Assembly (NCBI GenBank): GCA_964036045.1
Contig: OZ038378.1
Span: forward strand, 164,734,001 to 164,798,000
Direction of reading: 5' to 3'
Source: Eutreptiella sp. 'Long Island Sound 2002'
Taxonomy: Eukaryota > Protista > Euglenida
Length of the DNA stretch: 64,000 bases
In this document: piece by piece, positions 3,540 to 48,190 of the stretch
Layout: each line of letters starts with the position of its first letter
How positions within the stretch are numbered: position 1 is the first letter of the stretch
Notes under the pieces: model-generated
Seen by the model: only the letters and a program-made list of their open reading frames with translations
Told to the model about the DNA's origin: nothing
Database searches by the model: none
Translations under genes and position numbers: made by a program

Positions 3540-6500
3540 ACGTCTGCCTCCCCTTGCGGGTGGTGCACTGTGGGTGGTGCTGAGCCTGGCGACTTCGCGC
3601 CGAGCGGGGCATCCCAAGGGGGTGCTTGTCGCTGCGGGCGGTGCGCTGTAGGTCGCACGCTCGTTCGTGCGGGGGGGGGCAGCGGCAGGGGCCCGGGGCA
3701 TTGGCCGTGGTAACGGCCACGCAGGCAGGGGGACCGGGAGGTGGTCGCGGTGGCAGGAGCAGGACCAGGACGGGGATGGCGGTGGCGGTGGCAGTGGGAG
3801 TCCGGGCGTGGGGGCGGGAGGAGGAGGGGCAGAGGGCCTCTGCCCGTGCCCATGCCCCATGCCCCTGCCCCCGTCCCTCCCTCTGCCGCCGCCACCGCCC
3901 CGTGTCCGCGCGACTCGCCAGGCCTCCGCCCCCGTGCACGTGCCCCTGGCTCTGGGTCTGCCCCGTGCCCCTGCCCTCGCCGTAAGACTGGCAGCGGTCG
4001 GCCCCGCCATTTTGGGATGGTGTGGGCCGCAGCGCCACCATTCAGTGCCCATCGCCAGCCCCTCTCGGCGCTTTCCCTTGCAGTCCGCTCGCGGTCGCGA
4101 ACTGTGTTGTCCTCGTTGTTGTGAACGATGAGTGACTGTACGACACCCCCTTACCACGCCCCACGGCCGCGCTGGCCCGCCTCTCTTGCCACCGCGGGCG
4201 TGGGGTGCGTACTGATACTTGGATCCTGTGTCCAACAATGGCGTGTCTACGCAACGTACACTGCCGACACCTTTGCCGCAGAACATGCCCGTGCCCACGG
4301 AGCCAATCAGTGGTCACTCTGCAAAGAGTAGCAACCGGGGCAATGGCTGTCAGCTATTGTGCAGACGCACAGTAGTGAGTCCCACTGCTGCCGCTGGGCT
4401 TCAATGTGGGACGGCCTGTTCTGCGGCGCAATACTCCACGTACTAATGGCCTACCAATACCTTTTGTTGTTTGCTTGTTTTTTGCAGCGGGGCTCGTACT
4501 GATGTCGAGGGACTCTCAGGCGCGGTGCGCGCGCGGTGCTTGCATTTGGGTTGCAGGAGCCAGGGCAGTGATGATGTTGGAGACACCCTCCACCAAAAAA
4601 ATCAATGTAGCCCCCCCCCCCCCCCCGCAGAAGGAGCGGTGAGAGGCCGATAGGCGCCGCCACAGGCAAACAATTATATACCGAGGCCGGCGTTTGTGGT
4701 CTGTTTTCGGTTTCGCAACAGCGTGCCATGTCTTGTCCCAGGGCCATGTGCACTGCAGTGCACAGACTGCCCCTCGTCTGAACGCCGCACGCGGTTGTTT
4801 CCGTTGGTTTTTGGCCCCCGGCTGTTGTTTAGACAAAGGAGGGGGTTGGCTGCGCAGACACGCTGCAGGAAAAACGTGTTGTAGGACAGCAACAGTGCAT
4901 TCCAGATGCCTCCAAGGGGCAGTATTTTTTGAGGGGTCCTGACGGGAGACCGTTGACTCGGAATTTCGTCAAAACCCGCCACCGTGCGCATGGGGCATGA
5001 GCGGCGTGCGCCCGGTGCGGATACTCTCTGACAGGATTGCGCTGTCTGTCACGGTCCTGGCCTCCCATTGACCTGTGCGCGTATGTGTGGCGTTCTCTTA
5101 CTGATGCCTCCGCTTCAAGTCTCTTCCATTGACCACAAATGCCACAGACTCGGATGCACTGTGCGTTCGGATACTCGCAGAGGCATGACCAATGACTACG
5201 TCCTTTTCAATTCCACCCGGGAACGCAGGCCTGGCAAGGTGCTGTGCGGGGCTTGCGGCTGGAGCATGGTCCGATTGCTGGGTGAGGTCCGGCAGTTTGC
5301 CCTTCCTTGTTGGTGGCATCTGCAGTGCACGTACGCCCGAGGACCATGCACACGTCCAAGTCTAGTGTGTTTTTTTTTGTTTGGTAAGGATGCAGTGAGT
5401 AGTGTTTGTGTGACGTATTCATATTCCGTGGACAGCCCACAGCGCCACGCATGCGTGACACCCGTGCACATCCCATGCACCCGTGGCTTTCCGTTAATCC
5501 CACTCAATGGTTGTCATATGACGTAGTCCAGGAGCAGGGGCAGCGCGATGCTGCGTTCCCACCGAATTCACTCATGTTGAGGGAGGGGTCCAGGACTTGG
5601 GAATTGGTGAACTTTCTGGGCAAGGTCTCTTGTGCAACGCAGCTCACAGCAGCACCATGGTTGCAACACAAGGCCCAGGGCTCCATTTTGTTGCCTATTG
5701 TAGCAGCTCACTGAGTGTTTGTTATGTGGAGTTATACAATCCTCTTCTTGATTCACCTTAGGGAGGCTTCATGGATGATCCGTCATAACAGCAGCGAACA
5801 TGGCATTGTACAGGAATTGTGCAAGGGCCATGGTTTATCCTTGGGACCTGCAAATGTTTGCAGTTCACAATCTCACGTTTTATCATCCACCACATGTACA
5901 GGGGTGCTCCGGGACGCACCTTGTGCAGTCACACATCTTCTACATGGTGAACATACGACTGAATTTCTTGGGGTTTCTTTGTTCTGCAGCCTTTTTGTTC
6001 TGCTCAAGGACGGTGTTTGGCTGTGGCACAAATGCTGCACAATTGTGCACGAAGATGCACAAAGGTGCACAAAAAGGGGTGGAGTGGAACGTTGAGATAG
6101 CATCAGTGAGGGATTGGGGGCACACAGGGAGTCAAGGCATTGACGAGTCAGCACTCAGATTTGGAAGGTCTCATAACTGCTAGTTACTGAAATTGCCGGT
6201 GGTGAGGATTGTGATGCCAGACATAGTCAAAGTTTTTGGTGCAAAATGTGACAAGCAGTTGCTAGGCACCGCGCCCCCCGCACCACAAGCTACAACAGCC
6301 CTCCATAAAGCCCTCGCTAGCCCCCGACTGCAGAACCTCAACGACACCTGTGCTCACAGAACTGAGGCCCAGTGTTTGGGCAGGCTCTCAATGGGACACT
6401 GGACCAAAGTTCCGCAGAAGCTCCAGTTTAGCCCCCCTTGTCACAGGTGCAGCTGCATTTTTGAATTTACTGCCAGCGAACCCACTGGTCCTCCCCTAAT

Positions 6501-9500
6501 GTTCTTGTCCAGAATTCCGTTTGCCTGCAGGAGAGGGGCCAGGGAGTGTGAGACCGTATTTACTACCAATCGACCCAAGGAAGAGTGGGACCCGAGGCAG
6601 AAGGGAGGGGAGTGAAACAGGAGGTGGTCAAGCGTGGATGCCCAAGAGCTTTGGGTGTCACATACACTCAGTCCCAGGGACACACTATTGCCTGTTCTCT
6701 GTGTGGGAAATTTGCAGAATCGAGTACTGCGTTGAAGGCCACGTGGTGCAGCATCCGATTGCACCATCACATCGTGGTAACAAAGTAGTAGCAGGAAAAA
6801 CACAGTAAAAACCAATAACAAGAACGCACCAAGAAAAGGTACAGTGTTTTCTGGGGCTCTGAAATTAGATTTTCACCAAAGTTTTAGTTCAACAGCCTGC
6901 AAGATGCATGCGCAGTGCACTTACGGTGCGCGCATGGTGCACTTACAGTGTGCAGACTCTCCTAGGGAGAGCAAAGTTTCGGGCATTTGTGTATTTCTCC
7001 TTCTCCACCATTGCACAAACTTAAGTTTAGCAATAAACTATAGTTTTGACTCAGCAGGTCCAGGCCGGGTCATTGTTTATGTGGAGTGAGATCCAGACCT
7101 GAGCGGGGGGGGGGGGGGATTTGTCACCTCCTCCCGCATTGCAGTTTGATGAGTCGAGCCGCCAGTCGGTTCCAACATGTTCCAATATGGACAGGCAAAT
7201 GATGGACTGCTGGACTGGCCTTGCATTTGTGTATTTGTTTGTTTCAGTGAGCTGTGACTGGTTAGGGTGGGCTGGTCAAGGAGGCACATACAACAAAACC
7301 ATGGTGCAAAAACTCTTGTTCAAATGTGTTCATTGTTTGGCCAATGCATGTTGCCACTCTCCGAGGTCACTCCATGCATCCTCCAGCGGGTACGAAAAGT
7401 ACATGTTTGCTGTGACATGCCCCTGTCCTTAACCAAACTTGGAGGGTGTGGCATTGATTTTAGCAAGGCAGTCCAATCACATGAAATATGATACCTGAGT
7501 ATTATTAGCTGAGAACAAAACCGTGGCGGGTCCCACTGGAGTTGGGGGGCCTGGGTGGTTGGTTCAAGGCTCATGGGCGGGTGTGTGGTTGAATAAGAGA
7601 GCCCCTCCTGATTTTCATTTTCCCCCTCAAGAAAGTTCTTCTCATGTGGCTGGCTGGGTAAAATTTGGGTCAGCCAGGGGGGGGGGGGGGGCAGTGCGCC
7701 TGGCATCTTTTTTGGGTCACCTTTGATACGGAGTGCCCCTTTCTGGTCGGGGAGATGGACCGGCCCCTTTCTAGTTGGGGATATGGACTGGTTGACATGT
7801 TGAATCTTTTCAACCATTGTCCCCATTTTCCGTTCTCTGTGACACATTTCACGAACTCCATGCCTAACAGTTCCACTGGTGGCATATGGAGTGCCGACCT
7901 GTGGAATTCTAAGTATGTGTCACATGTTTAAAAGTGAATTGTTGCCGTTGAAATGTCGGCGGTATAGGCATTACCATTAAATGCATTTGAACGGGTACAA
8001 CTTCTCAACTCTGTGCTCATCCCACGCTGGCTGTATCATACCATGTTCATCCCACATGACCGCATGTTTCAGCACATAGACAAAATATGTTTAGAATTTG
8101 CTGCCATTGCCAAAGGATTAGAACACAACAAAGAGAACATACACAAGGCTCACAATGTTACCCACATCAACTCACTTGTCAAGTATGGAGGACTAGGACT
8201 ACAACAAATATACTGGGCTTCTAGACCTAGGTACGTCACCCTTGTCCAAGGATTACCTCGGAAACCCACTGGTAGATTGTCCAGATTGGTGGCACAACCC
8301 ATAGAACGCGTGATGACGCCTCTTCGGGACTATGTCACAGTCTTGTCTCAGATAGGAGGGAACACTACACTGGTTGTAGCCCCGCGCAGAAGACCCCCCA
8401 CTTCCGCAAATCTCATTGATGAGCAGACATCCGGTGATGAAGAATGGATTACGCAACAAGAAGTGGCAGTGGGCATACCTGAATTAGCCAGAAGGTACGT
8501 AACACGATGCAGTGCAAATGAGGATCCCACGGACGGAGAAGTCCCACCAAGTTTTACCCCCGTGGAGATGGCAGGAATACAATGCTACACCAATGGAAAG
8601 CAGGCAGAAGGCGCAGGTAAATTAACCCGGGAAGTAGGAGGAAGAACAATATACAGAGCAGGAGGAGCCATCACTTGTGGTCCACTACTGGTCATTACCC
8701 GAGTGACCGGGCCACAAACCTCATACAGGGCGGAACTACAAAGTGTTGCGGTTAATTCGACTTTGGCTAGCGCACATCAGGAACTGACTTACGACAACAA
8801 AGCAGTTGTGGACCACGCCCTACAGCCTCCCCATAGGGAACGTTCCGATGTGGATTTACGACTCACCATCCAAGAGGAAACGGAACAAGCCCCTCCGGTT
8901 GAGGTGGGTTCCAAGCCACAGGGATATAGCCAAGGCCAAAACCAAGGAAGAGCGAACGGAGATCAAGCGTAACGATGAGTCGACTGGCTTGCCAAAATGG
9001 CAACTGGCCTACCGCTCCCTGAATACACTCCTACCCACCCAGGTGATATTGCTGTCAATGGGGGTCCGGCGCCTACCCCAGCCAAAAAATGGGTCATAGA
9101 GAGGAGACACTATGACTTGTTTTCGGGAACACATTGAGTGTCTTGGCTCCCGCTCAAAGGGACCCGCCGGATGACATGGGTAAAATGGCCAAGGGGAAAT
9201 GAGCGGTGGGATGGATGTGGCGCGCCATGGGATCACAATGTTGTGAAATGCCCCATGTGCAATACCAAGCATGGCACCACCGTGCACAGACGGCTGATTC
9301 AATGCCCAAAATGGGCTCCCTCCTTCCGGAAGGCATGGGCACACTCATGGGGCACATGAGCTGAATACACAGAGCAATGGTGCAATAATGCGTCCCCGGA
9401 AGACATGCACCATGTTGCGTGCCTCAGAGTTCCCAGTTCTTTCTATGACCAATTGCCCCAGGGATATGGACCTCACTTCCCGGAGCACGTGGCTCATCAC

Positions 9501-17600: not shown

Positions 17601-19650
17601 ACCGAAGCTTTGCAATTAGTAGTGGTGGCCAAAGGCATTGGCATCTAGCATAGAATCGGTGGTGCAGGGGGCAGCCCCACCCCCCCGCCCCAAGAAACAA
17701 GAGCAGCGGCATTGCCCCTGCCGGGATTCTTTTTGTGCATGGGGAGCACCCCCTCCCTCTGTGGCCCAGAGCCAGCCCCCCCCCCCCCCCCTTGTTTAGG
17801 GGGTGGTCAACAGTCCGGTAGACCTTGTGACCGGACACCCGGGTACGGCCGCCCAATCGGGTCCCGTAGGGAAGGCGGCGCGGACCGTGGGTTGGCAACT
17901 AGGTGAGGCCTTGACCCAACCCAACCCAACCCCCCCTTAGGGGGGTTTCTCATCATCTTCTTCTTCCTCATTTTTGAATCCAGTAACTATTGCGCCGCAG
18001 CCGCTAAGCCAACTTGTGTTCGTCAATGCGGGGCGGCCGGCCAATTTATTGGCACTAGGGCTGACCCCATCCTCCCCCTCAGGGGGGGCAACCCATAGTG
18101 GGGGGCGGCCGGATCGGTTCCATAGGAGGGTGAGCACCGAAGAGACCTAGTCCCAACGTGCTCGTTCCTCTTGGCCGCCGTGCCTCATAGGTGGGGAACT
18201 TGTATGGGGGGAGGGGGCGCCCGAACTCTGCTCGGCCCCCTCCCTCCGCCCTCTACCTTTGTACATAGGCCTACGGACATTAAAAGGAGTTGTACCCGGG
18301 TTTCCCTATTTTCACCCCTTTTCACACATTTTTTGCTCATTTCCAGCACATCCATTGCTTTCGAGGACCCCGAGAAGGTAGGGGTCATGTAGCCATATTG
18401 ATCCCTCCCCACCATGGGGACCCCGAGAAGGCAGGGGTGATGCAGCTATATTGATCTCTCCCCACCACCACAGTTTGTGGGCAGTGCAATGAGAAGTATT
18501 GCGCTGAATGTATTGGCCCGCACACTTGTGGGATGAAGTTGTGCATGTTGCACCATGATTCTGAAATCCTTCTTTACCTCTGTGACCTTCCCATGTTACA
18601 ATAAACCCTCTATTATTTCCTTGGAACACAATTCTAGGCAGGGGTTACGGTTGTCAAATAACAATGCATGAGATCTAAAAGGGCTAGAGGAGGGAGTGAT
18701 GTTTGGTGGTAAAGCATTGGGATAGATGGCGGGAACATTGATTTGGATGCTGGGTGCGCGCCGGGCAAACATACCCTCATACTGCCACAACACACGGCAC
18801 ATCCTGCGGCATCACACAACAAATCATGCAACAACACAGGGCTGTGCTATCTGACCGACCTCACCACCACCCCCCCCCCCCCCCTTGCACCAGCACTGCC
18901 TTGTCCAAGCACGGGAGCCTGTCTGACTGTTGCCTTCCTGAGCGCTTTGTCAGGTTTCCTCTTGTGAGCAAGCGACCTCGTCTGACCGTCGTTTTCTTGG
19001 TTTTCAGTGTGGTTGTGCAAGGGGTGGGGGTTAGGGTCCCCTTGAGAGGTCACTGATTCACGCACCCTGATGCACGCAGGGTACACAGATCGCCCTCAGT
19101 CCTGTGTAGGGGGGGCCTTGCCTCCGCTTTTAAGCCCCGCCTTAGGCTGCGGCAAGGACCCCCTCCGGGATAGTGCTTCTGATGATCTATGGGGATATTT
19201 AAAACAATATCCCCGACAAGTGCCACTGCACTCAGTGCCCAGGGCCTGCCATGGCCTGACGCAAAGCAATGCACCCCATAATAAACCCCATGCGACAACA
19301 GAACACCCGCTTGCAGCATTCAAAGCAGCATTTTGGGTAATTGCAGGCTTGCTGTAGGAGGTGTTTGCAGCGTCTAATATTGCCCATGGCTGATGGTGAA
19401 TAGTTCATGGTGGTCACCATGGTAGCCCCCAATGTGTGTTTTGCTGTGCATTCTCAGGCATCACCCCTTTTCCAGCAGGATGCCAACGCTTGGCACACAA
19501 CCGCAGGTCAACGGCCCCGCATCAAACTCGAAACCAATGTGTGGCCCATGTCACCGCCAGTGGTGTATTGAGACTGAATCCTCTTGCAAACCTGCTGGGA
19601 GCGCAGCCGCCAATGCGTTGTCTGGGGTCCAGGACCTTTTTGCTGCGCCT

Positions 19651-28469: not shown

Positions 28470-29693
28470 GGGAATGCCGTGCACGCAGTGCGCACACAGT
28501 GCGAAGTTTTGGATGTCGGCAAATACTCGAACCTTAGTTTCGGCCCCTTTTCACAAGTTTTTGGTTCCGTACCAGGGTTTTTTTTCAGCTTCCTATGCAT
28601 TTAGGATGTGGCGTATTTGAATTGTCAACCATTTTTGCCGATTTTCAACCAGTTCCCCCTATTTCCTCCCCCGCATGGGCGTTAGCGCACGGTGCGCGCC
28701 GGGCATCTTTGAGGGAGCGTTATTTTGTGCCTTCAACCTTCCGGTGCTATTGAGGAAACCGGGCCAATTATCCAATCCACGCTTTGTTGCGTGGCCAAGT
28801 GGGCTTTCCCTTGCTACTGAACAAAGCATTGAAGTGGGTTCAAGAATCATGGATCCGGGGTTTGTACAAGCCGGACTTTGTGGAAGAAGGGCATGTTTAG
28901 AGTGGGGATGTGGGCTTTCCCTTGCCACTGAACAAAGCATTGAAGTGGGGTCAACAAGCATGGATTTTGGGTTTTGTCCCAATTGGACTTTATGGAACAA
29001 GGATATGTTCAGAGTGGGCAAGTTGAAGGCAGTTTCGTTGTTCTCATGTGGCCTTTGCTGCTTCGCCGTGCTACGAGACAGGTGACAGGTATTCTTGGGT
29101 GAGTATCCTAGGGGGAACGTTAGCGCGCCGGGCGCGCGCCGGGCATCTTTTTGGACCCGTGCCCCACCGGTGACCTTTTAGGGGGTGCGCTAAGGGGCGC
29201 ACTTAGGACAATCTTTGAATCCACGCTTCGTTGCGTGCTGCATCATGGTGACCCCCGGCGTAGGTTTTGACTTCCGATTTTGTTCCCTTTGTTGGGGACC
29301 CCCGAGAATGCAGGGGTGATGTAGCATTTCCGCCCTCTTTTGGGCCCCAACCGTCCGGTGCTATTGAGGAAACCGGGACAATCTTTGAATCCACGCTTTG
29401 TTGCGTGGTGCATCATGGTGACCCCCGGCGTAGGTTTTGACTTCCGATTTTGTTCCCTTTGTTGGGGACCCCCGAGAATGCAGGGCACGCATTGAGCAGC
29501 TGTTTGCTCGGTTGTGGCATTGGGGTTTGGTTAGGAACATCTGAGGGAGGGTAAATGGGAGGGTAAATCTGGGGCTGAAGTCGGGATAGTTAATACAAAA
29601 GTAGCGCGCCGGGCGCGCGCCGGGCAAACATTCCCCCCTAGCCTCTGCGTGCGCAGTATGCACGCAGTGCGCACGCAGTGCAAGAACTTCCCC
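28470..29693. mobile_element. Non-autonomous TIR element (PIF/Harbinger-like) hosting a nested insertion
   Basis: ttaa|GGGAATGCCGTGCACGCAGTGC...CAGTGCAAGAACTTCCCC|ttaa; shares blocks with 20371-21098. Confidence 0.75.
29111..29637 (+). mobile_element. PIF/Harbinger deletion derivative, CTA TSD
   Basis: TIR GGGGGAACGTTAGCGCGCCGGGC / GCCGGGCAAACATTCCCCC; CTA at 29108-29110 and 29638-29640; empty site in the paralog at ~21030; transposase remnant RIEQLFARLWHWGLVRNI at ~29490. Confidence 0.9.
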
Positions 29694-29824
29694 TTAAGGA
29701 GCGCCAAACCATGCCTTGGTTAGGATCAGGAGAGAAACACGAAACAGGAGCCAAAACAGTGGAGAGAGGGAGTAAAGGGGGAACGTTAGCGCGCCGGGCG
29801 CGCGCAGGGCATCTTTTGTGACCC

Positions 29825-30130
29825 GTGCCCTACCCGTGGATTGTTGCCGTTGATATGTTGGGCAACATTATATGGATTTGCCCCTTGGCCCCCGGGACAT
29901 CAGCAGATGTTTTGATTTGGGATGGGTATGGACCTTCTCGTACCCGAGGTGATTTCTTTGATTTCGAAGTTGGGGGCCATGATGGTGCTTATAAGGGCTG
30001 GATTCATGTCATTGTGCCATTCATTGGAAGAAAGAATGGCACTTTGACAGCCCGCCAACAATGTTACAATGACGTGCACGTGTGGTATAGGGCACGCATT
30101 GAGCAGCTGTTTGCTCGGTTGTGGCACGCA
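29825..30130 (+). pseudogene. PIF/Harbinger (DDE_Tnp_4-type) transposase C-terminal fragment
   Basis: GHDGAYKG..VIVPFIG..LTARQQCYNDVH..YRARIEQLFARL, matching the D-x-x-Y...YN..H..R..IE..F signature. Confidence 0.85.
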
Positions 30131-30149
30131 AGATGAGGCAGAGGATGAG

Positions 30150-30255
30150 GCAGAAGTGTGTGTGTTGTGTTGCCAGAACGCTCCACCGCCGCATTTTGTG
30201 ATGAGTGTAAGGAGCACTATTGTACTGAATGTATTGACACCCACACTTGTGGGAC
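30150..30255 (+). pseudogene. B-box-like zinc finger fragment
   Basis: CVLC..(frameshift)..HFCDECKEHYCTECIDTH. Confidence 0.55.
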
Positions 30256-30261
30256 CAATGT

Positions 30262-30415
30262 TATGATGCAGCTCTACTGTTCGCGATACCTCAATAACGC
30301 CTATCGCTTCTACTGGAGATCAATGCGGTTGTGCTATCCTAACCCCGCATTCTCCCAACTTGCTAAGGTGTTGACCAAGATCGCCCTTAAAGGAGCGAGA
30401 GTGGTACTGTGTACC
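30262..30415 (+). pseudogene. N6-adenine DNA methyltransferase fragment (Dam-like, DIRS-associated type)
   Basis: YCSRYLNNAYRFYW..LCYPNPAFSQLAKVLTKIALKGARVVLCT resembles DA..W..YANPPFS.+..VL.KI..E.A.V+L. Confidence 0.7.
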
Positions 30416-31317
30416 CTAGTTTGCAACTTTCTTGAGCTGGGGCAATTTGGGTCACCTAATTCTAAGGGCGTTTCCAAGGGGTGTGCTTGGGGGCTCTTCG
30501 GGGGGAACATAGTCTAAAAGTAGCGCGCCGGGCGCGCGCCGGGCAAACATTCCCCCAAACACAACCGTCAGGACCCCTGGGGTTCTAGTACGGCCAGACG
30601 CCTCAAGTAGTCGCACTGCGCACGCAGTGCGCTTAAATTCCCCCTAAAAGGGCAGCGGAGGGTGTGCGGAAGTCCGCTGCGTTGTTCCACAAAGGCTGGT
30701 AGGTCGATTGCCATGCCTTTTGGTATGACATGCTTGTTGGTCCAGGTCAGTTCTGGGGGACAGTGTGTGTGTGGGGCGGGGGGTGGGGCTCTGATAGTGA
30801 GAGTGGAACATCTGCCCCACTGCACTGGTCCACTTTTGGTAACCCCCACCCCACCCCCCCACTAGTGATACCACAGGCAAAATGCCTGGAAATGCGGTGC
30901 ACCTTTGATGCATAACACTTGGGAGTCCGGAACCCCCTGGTCCTGAGTCGCAAGTTGGCGTATTTGCGAGCTCCACTTGCCAATACATTAAAAGAATCGG
31001 GATGCAACATTTCATTGCTCGCTGATACAACAGAAGACCCTTGTTCCGCCCGCAGAGCGGGTGTGGCATGGATGCAATCACTACACATTGCCACCCCGTG
31101 CTGTTTGTTCTGATGTGAATTTCAACCATGGTTAACAATGTTATTCCCAGCATGGCTGTCACGTAGGTTCAGAGCACTGGGGAACATGCGTCTGCCACTA
31201 TTGGTCCCTATCGTCACGGGACCCCGCCCCCCTCTTGCACAAGCACCGCCTTGTCTAAGCACCAGGACCCGGTCGGACCGTCACTTTTGCCCCCCCCCCC
31301 CCCCCCTTTGTAACAGC

Positions 31318-46679: not shown

Positions 46680-47034
46680 GGGAGTATTAGCGCGCTAGGC
46701 GTGCGCCAGGCATCTTTTTTTGACCATTCCCCACCCGTGCCTGTTTTTGCCCCCACCAACTTGTAGTACCTTCTCGCCGTGTCAAAGAATTTTGCCCGTC
46801 CTTTCCACCCAGTTTATGACGATGGCAAGGGTGGTGATTGGAAGTGGTGGGAGTGACATTTTGTGTTGTTGAATTCTCATATTTTGGCTTATGCAACGTG
46901 CTTTGCAGAGAAGGTTTGCGGTCTAGCGCGGTCTACTTGGGGGACTTCCCCAGGTGAGGATAAACTTGGGGCTAGAGATAAGAAACTTAATGCAAAGGTA
47001 GCGTGCCGGGCATGCGCCGGACAAACATTCCCCC
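46680..47034 (+). mobile_element. PIF/Harbinger MITE, AAA TSD
   Basis: Ends gggagtattagcgcg / gcgccggacaaacattccccc; AAA duplicated; highly similar to 47399-47764. Confidence 0.85.
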
Positions 47035-47103
47035 AAAGCATGCATTGTTCATGGCGAAGCTTTGCGTAGCACATGAGTATTGAGATGGCCACAGGTATAT
47101 TTT

Positions 47104-48190
47104 GGGGGCGCCTTAAGCGCAGGGCGCGCGCAGCACGCGCGCACTGCAACTATTTGGGCGTCTAGCCGTAGTAGAAACCCATACTTTGTGGTACTTTGGG
47201 CATCATTGTTGTTTGGTAGTAGGTTTTGATGCATTGGGGATCTAGCATTTTTGGATGTTCACCCTATTTCACCCATTTCTACCTTTTTGCACACATTTTT
47301 TACCCATTTCCACCACATCTACTCTTTTTCTCGGCTGATTGATATGGTGATACACTTTCAGGGTGCTTGCTACAGGACATCATACTTCCCTCCTCATTGG
47401 GGGAGCGTTAGCGTGCCAGATGCGCGCCGGGCATCTTTTTTGAACCATTACCCACCCGTGCTTGTTTTTGCCCCCACCTCACCAAACAACTTGGAGTACC
47501 TTCTTGCTGTGTCTAAGAATTTGGCCCATCCTTTCCACCCAGTTCATGACGATGGCAAGGGCGGTAGTTGGAAGTGGTGGGAGTGACATTTTGTGTTGTT
47601 GAATTCTCATATTTCGGCTTATACAAGGTGCCTTGCAGAGAAGGTTTGCGGTCTAGCGCGGTCTACTTGGGAGACTTCCCAAAGTGAGGATAAACTTGGG
47701 GCTAGAGATAAGAAACTTAATACAAAGGTAGCGCGCCGGGCATGCGCCGGGCAAACATTCCCCCATTTCTCAGGCCCACTTTCTCCAGGGATCTCAGTAT
47801 TGGGGATAGGGTGTTCTACACCCGCTCCAAGAGCCTGTGACCTCCTGTCACGGTGGTTGGGACGGCTGAAGACGGACTCCTCCACTTGGAATACTACCAA
47901 GATGGGTTGAGAGTGGTGAATCGACAATTCAAGATGGAGTCCATCTCCTTTGCCATCCCAAGTTCAGATTTGCCACCTCGCCGCCCAACACACAGTCAAG
48001 TTCCCCCCCAAAGGCCCCTGTTCCTTCATGGCTGCCACAAGAACCGGGAACGTCCCCCTCAAGGTCCCCTCCAGTCCAAATTGGGTCGCCTAATTCTAAG
48101 GGTGTTTCCAAGTGGCGTGCTTTGGAGCTCTTCGGGGGGAACATAGTCTAAAAGTAGCGTGCAGTGCGCGTGCAGTGCAAGGATTCCCCC
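47104..48190 (+). mobile_element. PIF/Harbinger-like derivative, TTT TSD, with SH3/Tudor-like cargo and a nested MITE
   Basis: ttt|gggggcgccttaagcgcag...gcagtgcaaggattccccc|ttt; right subterminal block shared with 30447-30520. Confidence 0.7.
47399..47764 (+). mobile_element. PIF/Harbinger MITE, ATT TSD
   Basis: att|gggggagcgttagcg...gcgccgggcaaacattccccc|att. Confidence 0.9.

Follow-up and report, generated by a model that had tools for sequence, protein, structure and literature searches.

The DNA analyzed here (the window) is a stretch of 64,000 nucleotides from the euglenid Eutreptiella sp. 'Long Island Sound 2002' (assembly GCA_964036045.1, contig OZ038378.1, positions 164,734,001 to 164,798,000). 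At 29777-30556 it contains a complete non-autonomous element of the PIF/Harbinger type, 780 bp long and with the ends GGGGGAACGTT...AACATTCCCCC, which comprises a transposase fragment, a Cys/His finger and a segment resembling Dam-like adenine methyltransferases. For this combination the first-pass annotation had offered two explanations, namely a deletion product of an autonomous Harbinger family with a DNA methyltransferase of its own or a Pack-type capture from a DIRS retroelement. We consider it very probable that the element is a young, non-autonomous Pack-type member of an abundant clan of PIF/Harbinger-like transposons and that its cargo stems from the pol region of a DAM-LTR, a long terminal repeat (LTR) retrotransposon with a Dam-like domain. 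The element consists of the following parts:

29774-29776: 5' copy of the target-site duplication (TSD), AAA, read from the sequence
29777-29838, plus strand: 5' terminal region with the core of the terminal inverted repeat (TIR), GGGGGAACGTT (29777-29787), and a GC-rich subterminal motif, placed by identity to a sister element and by TIR alignment
29839-30126, plus strand: internal DDE_Tnp_4 fragment (TVAVD...ARLWH; PF13359, E 2.2e-5) in the open reading frame (ORF) 29825-30136
30127-30262, plus strand: C-terminal tail of the transposase with the linker QDEAEDEAE and the Cys/His finger, matching the ends of the ORF-derived proteins P0123, P0128 and P0240
30263-30418, plus strand: Dam-like fragment of 156 bp or 52 codons, probably captured, with a blastn match to positions 5905-6060 of the retroelement copy L082 and in frame with the finger
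30417-30556, plus strand: 3' subterminal region and 3' TIR (core 30546-30556), common to other clan members
30557-30559: 3' copy of the TSD, AAA, read from the sequence

Ends, transposase remnant and finger

The TIR core at 29777-29787 and the complement of the core at 30546-30556 agree in 10 of 11 positions, and the triplet AAA stands on both sides of a 780-bp unit which recurs in the genome. This confirms the TIR pair with a 3-bp TSD that had been read at this locus. Over the next ~25 bases inwards the TIR is only imperfect (25/35 in the extended alignment), because both ends carry the near-palindromic GC-rich motif TAGCGCGCCGGGCGCGCGC in one and the same orientation. Within the window the core pattern was counted six times, versus 0.14 expected occurrences. 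Both terminal regions are shared with other elements of the clan: 29777-29838 is 92% identical to the 5' end of a sister element at 29110-29172 (family D8), and 30417-30515 recurs with 98-99% identity in L014 (814-912) and L006 (2474-2572), two distinct non-autonomous clan members without the methyltransferase piece. Three-base-pair TSDs as in the PIF/Harbinger superfamily are found not only here but also in 27 other extracted copies, each with its own triplet; one of these TSDs contains one mismatch. The triplets vary widely (AGC, CTT, TGT, ACA, AAG, CCT, ATG and others), and among the extracted 780-bp copies a preference for TWA targets was not found, TTA and TAA being a minority.

The transposase fragment matches the Pfam profile DDE_Tnp_4 (PF13359) at profile positions 34-127 of 158, and the claim of such a fragment is thus borne out. 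The score of the window copy, 24.6 bits, is just below the cut-off of 24.8 bits; a copy identical to the consensus reaches 26.6, the long ORFs of the family 27.6-27.7 and a sister subfamily 33.7 bits, and the homology which defines the superfamily is therefore present. The regions of the second Asp and of the Glu are kept, whereas the region of the first catalytic Asp is missing. The transposase fragment, the finger and the methyltransferase-like segment all lie on the plus strand and in the same phase, as had been described, and are distributed over two ORFs, 29825-30136 and 30158-30517 (ORF2), with two stops between them. The tail is joined to the DDE fragment by a deletion of about 59 codons. 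With its TIRs and TSDs and its truncated and internally deleted transposase, the element is indeed a deletion derivative of a Harbinger-type family, in agreement with this part of the earlier proposal.

The finger CDECKEHYCTECIDTHTC is encoded by ORF2, which continues with ...YCSRYLNNAYRFYWRSMRLCYPNPAFSQLAKVLTKIALKGARVVL. It is a Cys/His finger with eight ligands (about 30160-30250), preceded by the acidic linker QDEAEDEAE, and in the consensus a 1-bp frameshift near 30178 puts its first CxxC out of frame. In full transposase tails the spacing is CxxC-x9-CxxC-x4-CxxC-x4-HxC, and in the sister subfamily P0186 (106 members; DDE part 71% identical) CxxC-x9-11-CxxC-x4-CxxC-x4-HxC. This is B-box-like in pattern only, as searches for zf-B_box and the ANCHR-like BBOX gave sub-threshold matches (E 0.18-4.2, 8-12 bits versus cut-offs of 24-27). 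Since the same finger is found at the ends of the long transposases of the clan, it is the native C-terminus of the clan's transposase and no additional module. Hence the finger noticed in the first pass is present, but its description as a separate B-box-like module does not hold.

Canonical PIF/Harbinger elements encode a DDE_Tnp_4 transposase and a Myb/SANT-like protein and insert into TWA. The 780-bp element resembles them in its DDE_Tnp_4 homology, its 3-bp TSD and its short TIRs and differs from them in the diverse TSDs and in a transposase that ends in a Cys/His finger.

Two isolated pieces of the same kind lie elsewhere in the window: a transposase fragment at 7791-7955, 73% identical to residues 64-118 of P0126, and a copy of the Cys/His finger at 18462-18571 with 77% nucleotide and 44% amino-acid identity.

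A fragment of a retrotransposon Dam-like domain

The methyltransferase motif reads NPAFS in the window copy, a private Pro-to-Ala change, and NPPFS in the consensus of the family. A match to the Dam profile (PF05869) above the curated cut-off of 28.1 bits and covering the fold was not obtained, the window copy scoring 11.7 bits (E 0.21) and the consensus copy 16.8 bits (E 0.0056); the 52 residues correspond to residues 184-235 of the donor pol. Nevertheless, the descent of the segment can be traced at the DNA level. Positions 30263-30418 align without gaps to L082:5905-6060 with 83% identity (blastn, E 5e-42), so that the methyltransferase-like segment noted earlier is present and descends from the Dam-like domain of a retroelement. 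Of the 27 differences 21 are at third codon positions, with 19 synonymous versus 6 non-synonymous codon differences, a distribution which reflects past purifying selection inside the retroelement lineage, whose imprint the fragment retains. L082 itself is a member of a sister subfamily of the real donor.

At the protein level the piece is about 90% identical to the retroelement ORFs P0059, P0065, P0070 and P0077, and dozens of proteins (up to 207 aa) retrieved by word search match residues 33-85 of ORF2 only, with 85-90% identity. In these retroelement ORFs (...KVLDTDAFDIVIGTDFLRRN...YQLVRPVLENGLAALQVDLNEVQVELFASKEQHMMQLYCSRYLNNAYRFYWRSMGLCYANPPFSQLAKVLTKIALEGARVVLCTPDWGTTGEHAYWRRLLDRM...) a protease motif precedes a longer Dam-like domain. 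The genome encodes P0077 itself at 100% identity, and relatives lie in frames of up to 1595 aa. The coding region of L082 (L082:2974-9999) comprises a gag-like frame of 793 codons, one in-frame stop (5353-5355) and a pol frame of at least 1548 codons, with the following domains (residues of pol):

13-100: aspartic protease
164-224: Dam (E 6e-4)
621-791: reverse transcriptase (RVT_1)
859-1018: RNase H
1198-1296: rve integrase

The order protease, Dam, reverse transcriptase, RNase H, integrase points to a Ty3/Gypsy-order DAM-LTR, with the Dam-like domain after the protease, as the donor family rather than a tyrosine-recombinase DIRS element. DIRS retroelements do possess a Dam-like methyltransferase domain (PF05869-like, with NPPF), but they use a tyrosine recombinase instead of a DDE integrase and have no protease. 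The donor thus shares the ultimate domain family with DIRS and differs from it in having a protease and an rve integrase; a tyrosine recombinase was not seen in L082. From the proposed Pack-type capture from a DIRS element the capture can be retained, whereas the DIRS origin has to be replaced. A pair of LTRs was not found within the 10 kb of L082 that were examined.

The homology to the retroelement breaks off sharply on both sides of the 52 codons. Upstream, the Harbinger sequence ...GGGACCAATGTT (transposase CGTNV) stands against ...AAAGAGCAGCAT in the retroelement; downstream, the Harbinger element passes into its own 3' subterminal region.

Two further observations concern the retroelements. 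Upstream of gag, L082 has another ORF with an rve domain (L082:1032-1973), which suggests tandem or nested retroelement copies. The loci with the top Pfam Dam scores in the genome (L061-L080) were tried as donors and gave no significant tblastn or blastn match to the piece, so that they belong to a different DAM-LTR lineage; this is the most abundant Dam-positive retroelement lineage of the genome and has NAPF in place of NPPF (WINAPFSRMQDVVLKAI).

Another derivative of the clan gives a hint how the capture proceeded. The P0019 type (68 members in its cluster), to which P0025 and P0039 also belong, has the 170-bp repeat module of the clan followed by a longer piece of the retroelement, which begins 17 residues earlier (VDLNEVQVELFASKEQH-MMQLYC...). 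Its 3' junction, VVLCTP/VCNFLELGQ, is identical to that of the 780-bp elements, and both types share a derived Glu-to-Lys change (ALKGAR), while the P0019 type keeps the ancestral Gly and Ala (SMGLCYANPPFS). Full-length matches to the P0019 type are found at 110 places or more with 78-100% identity, many of them with stops, and a further class begins at residue 26-27. The longer piece together with the same 3' junction points to a single capture and a later burst, with the P0019 type as the older and more diverged carrier.

Thus, we suggest the following course of events. A retroelement piece of at least 210 bp would have been captured once beside the 3' subterminal region, perhaps by template switching or filler-DNA synthesis during excision-gap repair or alternatively by co-mobilization and later deletion. 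After the capture the older carrier would have spread, and the transposase tail and the shortened fragment would then have been brought into one frame by a rearrangement. The product is composed of four parental pieces (the two ends, the central part of the DDE transposase and the C-terminal linker with the finger) and, as the fifth, the 156 bp that stem from the DAM-LTR pol with its Dam-like domain. Recently this 780-bp form would have been amplified, its ORFs being neutral passengers. Its movement would depend entirely on a full-length transposase of the family which acts in trans, recognizes the ends, excises the element and reinserts it with a 3-bp duplication. The element itself encodes no working enzyme, because the region of the first catalytic Asp is gone, two stops interrupt the frame and the Dam piece comprises only 52 residues from the middle of the domain.

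Copies, selection and long transposases

The genome to which the window belongs (2.28 Gb, 2317 contigs) was searched at the DNA level and yielded 2209 first-look candidates for the 780-bp family. All of the 40 matches scored were full-length (780 bp) at 98% identity and spread over many chromosomes, and 29 copies were 98.2-99.4% identical to their own consensus (window copy 98.3%). With copies about 99% identical to the consensus and more than two thousand candidates, the family is therefore young and very abundant. Among the 29 copies the ratio of non-synonymous to synonymous polymorphism (pN/pS) is 1.33 for the DDE fragment, 0.97 for the finger and 0.51 for the methyltransferase piece, and on the whole the pattern of substitutions appears neutral.

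Two features of individual copies may be added. At G000:C11:68231603-68241492 five matches to ORF2 lie on one strand with a regular spacing of 2,383 bp, and here a 780-bp copy appears to have become part of a 2.4-kb unit that is repeated in tandem. The copies L005 (C17) and L020 (C25) lie on different chromosomes and yet agree in their flanking sequence and in their TSD, AAG; this insertion is inside a larger duplicated or repeated unit.

The 119-aa frame of ORF2, which fuses the finger to the Dam-like piece, might act as a small protein or RNA, for example, as a decoy or regulator of the transposase or of DAM-LTRs or by giving rise to small RNAs directed at the latter, and in this way contribute to the success of the family. 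In favor of this, finger and fragment are fused in frame, about 144 of the 150 best matches have an open ORF, and the methyltransferase part has the lowest pN/pS and the lowest substitution density. On the contrary, an open frame of 119 codons is expected by chance at about 1% divergence, and the deviation of pN/pS is not significant as it derives from 30 substitutions (19 non-synonymous, 11 synonymous). In addition, the finger is incomplete in the consensus with its first CxxC out of frame, and the window copy has already lost the NPPF. We regard such a function as improbable. There is likewise only a slim chance that the presence of an in-frame finger–DAM-LTR fusion in more than 2,000 copies is not neutral and reflects cross-talk between the Harbinger clan and the DAM-LTRs. 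The fusion could then provide a small protein or sense/antisense RNA and act through small RNAs or a targeting of 5mC or 6mA against the Dam-coding region of the retroelements, or through a truncated finger protein that modulates transposition.

The second alternative is the one favored by the first-pass annotation, that is, an autonomous Harbinger element which encodes a Dam-like methyltransferase, possibly as a substitute for the Myb-like helper, and from which the 780-bp form arose by internal deletion. In accordance with this, all copies have the methyltransferase piece in the orientation and frame of the transposase tail, and NPPF is retained in the consensus. Evidence against it comes from the long transposase frames of the family, which were found as ORF-derived proteins by a word search with the natural 199-aa frame of L081 as query. 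Over the DDE fragment, P0122-P0134, P0160 and P0240 are 87-97% identical to the 780-bp element, and those studied in detail (P0122, P0123, P0125, P0126, P0128, P0130, P0160 and P0240) are 92-95% identical; they pass the DDE_Tnp_4 cut-off. The long ORFs read ...HFTDSMPISS...TVAVDMLGN...PGTSADVLIW...RARIEQLFARLWHWGLVRNIWRGGPNELHQSVRILLHFTQFCIRRQVRHPPYGPWEHVPPQVWTDQSNSAATQDEAEDEAEVCVLCCQRRSTVAVCDECKEHYCNECIDTHTCGTNVVC up to the stop. P0128 is matched over the full length of 282 aa at more than 100 genomic places, where open frames reach up to 760 aa, and long copies of the transposase therefore exist in the genome.

None of these long frames leads into the methyltransferase piece. Most transposase ORFs of the family end with ...CIDTHTCGTNVVC and a stop, two codons beyond the position where the piece is joined in the 780-bp element; P0123, P0128, P0240 and others end with ...QDEAEDEAEVCVLCCQRRSTVAVCDECKEHYCNECIDTHTCGTNVVC. 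All 17 retrieved transposase ORFs that keep the finger stop 2-32 residues beyond it and contain no methyltransferase sequence; in 13 cases the last residues are NVVC or NVIC. The clusters of P0126 and P0125 (32 and 7 members) have 17 extra codons in a shifted frame, ending in GPMLFVKYTTNDSWSG, which are unrelated to the methyltransferase. Among the 240 retrieved proteins 59 carry transposase-specific motifs without a counterpart in the 780-bp element and none combines such motifs with those of the methyltransferase; every methyltransferase-bearing protein retrieved is either retroelement sequence or a short Harbinger derivative. In the best 150 genomic matches to ORF2 the frame has 120-155 aa, and in none of them does it extend into a long transposase. 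Furthermore, the retroelement has additional in-frame homologous domain sequence on both sides of the 52 codons which the Harbinger element does not have, and the longer retroelement piece of the older derivative adjoins the non-coding 170-bp repeats and not the transposase. Judged from these frames, the case for a putative autonomous transposase without the methyltransferase piece is strong. The proposal of a Harbinger with its own DNA methyltransferase is already largely refuted, and we consider it very improbable.

Several candidates for a longer parent had to be discarded. L031-L060, the loci with the top DDE_Tnp_4 matches in the genome, show no more than 24-33% identity, lack the finger tail and thus represent other lineages; L081, a match with a 213-aa frame, turned out to be a 780-bp copy with a mutated stop. 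Genome searches with the DDE fragment or with ORF2 gave 780-bp copies only.

The methyltransferase piece could also be an independent DIRS or LTR insertion with its own boundaries into a single copy, the possibility which according to the first-pass annotation would speak against its proposal, and in fact this region has a dense nesting of further elements. However, the position and the junctions of the fragment are identical in every sampled copy on many chromosomes, and it has neither a TSD nor ends of its own. The fragment therefore travels with the 780-bp unit, and a local insertion has a negligible probability. A chance resemblance in non-coding transposon DNA, as might be suspected from the Pfam scores below the cut-off, is just as negligible in view of 156 bp at 83% identity (E 5e-42) with differences at third positions and about 90% amino-acid identity to dozens of ORFs.

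Some points nevertheless weigh against the Pack-type capture from a DAM-LTR pol and the neutral spread of the element. The only donor copy examined, L082, is just 83% identical to the methyltransferase piece. The autonomous copies without this piece are represented by ORF-derived proteins rather than by complete elements, and so the counter-evidence to a methyltransferase-encoding Harbinger likewise comes from ORFs rather than from the DNA of an autonomous element. Divergence and pN/pS were computed from the 29 copies with the highest scores and hence from a biased sample. In these copies the methyltransferase segment has the lowest substitution density, 0.0066 versus 0.011 per site; together with the pN/pS of 0.51 this may be weak constraint, although we read it as noise. 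Finally, a clear microhomology was not seen at the two junctions inspected, and the mechanism of the capture is one that we infer.

Related systems and neighboring elements

Pack-PIF elements are known from maize and rice, and one cluster from maize has an acquired region of 163 bp (Gisby and Catoni 2022, PMC8903248). Like the Pack-PIF elements and Pack-MULEs, the 780-bp element is bounded by TIRs and TSDs, is non-autonomous and mobilized in trans, and has amplified a foreign coding cargo of about 160 bp. What characterizes a Pack-type element, the TIRs of a family and a foreign sequence that transposes along with them, is found here together with a truncated transposase and the same fragment in the sampled copies. 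Unlike in Pack-PIF elements, the cargo is not a piece of a host gene but comes from a retrotransposon pol. Further differences from the plant elements are the euglenid host, the retention of two pieces of the own transposase and the unusually high copy number (about 2,200 candidates).

DAM-LTR retrotransposons have been described in Euglena gracilis (Fernandez-Moreno et al., bioRxiv 10.64898/2026.05.21.726589). According to this report the DAM domain folds into a five-strand sheet with helices and 46% of the DAM hits are without features of transposable elements (TEs); DAM fragments in DNA transposons are not mentioned there. The donor of the fragment agrees with the DAM-LTRs in its Asn-Pro-Pro-aromatic Dam-like domain within a Ty3-like pol, whereas the 780-bp element is a DNA transposon holding 52 residues of this domain.

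Taken as a Pack-type Harbinger derivative with a dead cargo of 52 codons, the element is ordinary transposon biology, and there is no evidence for a transposon-encoded methylase here. This removes the tempting lead of a DNA transposon with its own adenine methyltransferase. It provides instead a clean and datable case of a cut-and-paste transposon that acquires a piece of a retrotransposon and amplifies it thousands-fold in a euglenid genome, as well as a derivation series for a very abundant Harbinger-like clan, from the autonomous element via the older cargo carrier to the young burst of the 780-bp form. This has practical consequences for any count of Dam and DAM-TE sequences in Euglena, which the thousands of 52-codon orphans in Harbinger derivatives would inflate or confuse.

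Other members of the clan surround the element. The sister element at 29111-29637 is non-autonomous, 527 bp long and flanked by the TSD CTA (29108-29110 and 29638-29640). It contains two of the 170-bp tandem repeats (29206-29315 and 29376-29485, 98% identical) and keeps a transposase remnant, RARIEQLFARLWHWGLVRNI, which extends seven codons further into the transposase than that of the 780-bp element. At 30560-30646 (minus strand) and 29641-29693 there are ends of other clan members with a subterminal motif of the type GCGCACGCAGTGCGC in place of GCGCGCCGGGCGCGC; for 30578-30634 the L014 element has a match in its 5' subterminal region, on the opposite strand. From these flanking ends it follows that the 780-bp and 527-bp elements are nested in or beside older clan members. 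Further clan pieces are found at 46767-48149, with TIR cores at 47024-47034 and 47754-47764 (minus strand). Here the product encoded by 47790-48023 is homologous (53% identity) to the Tudor/SH3-like stretch at the N-terminus of P0240, and the 3' subterminal region of the 780-bp element recurs with 90% identity at 48077-48149.

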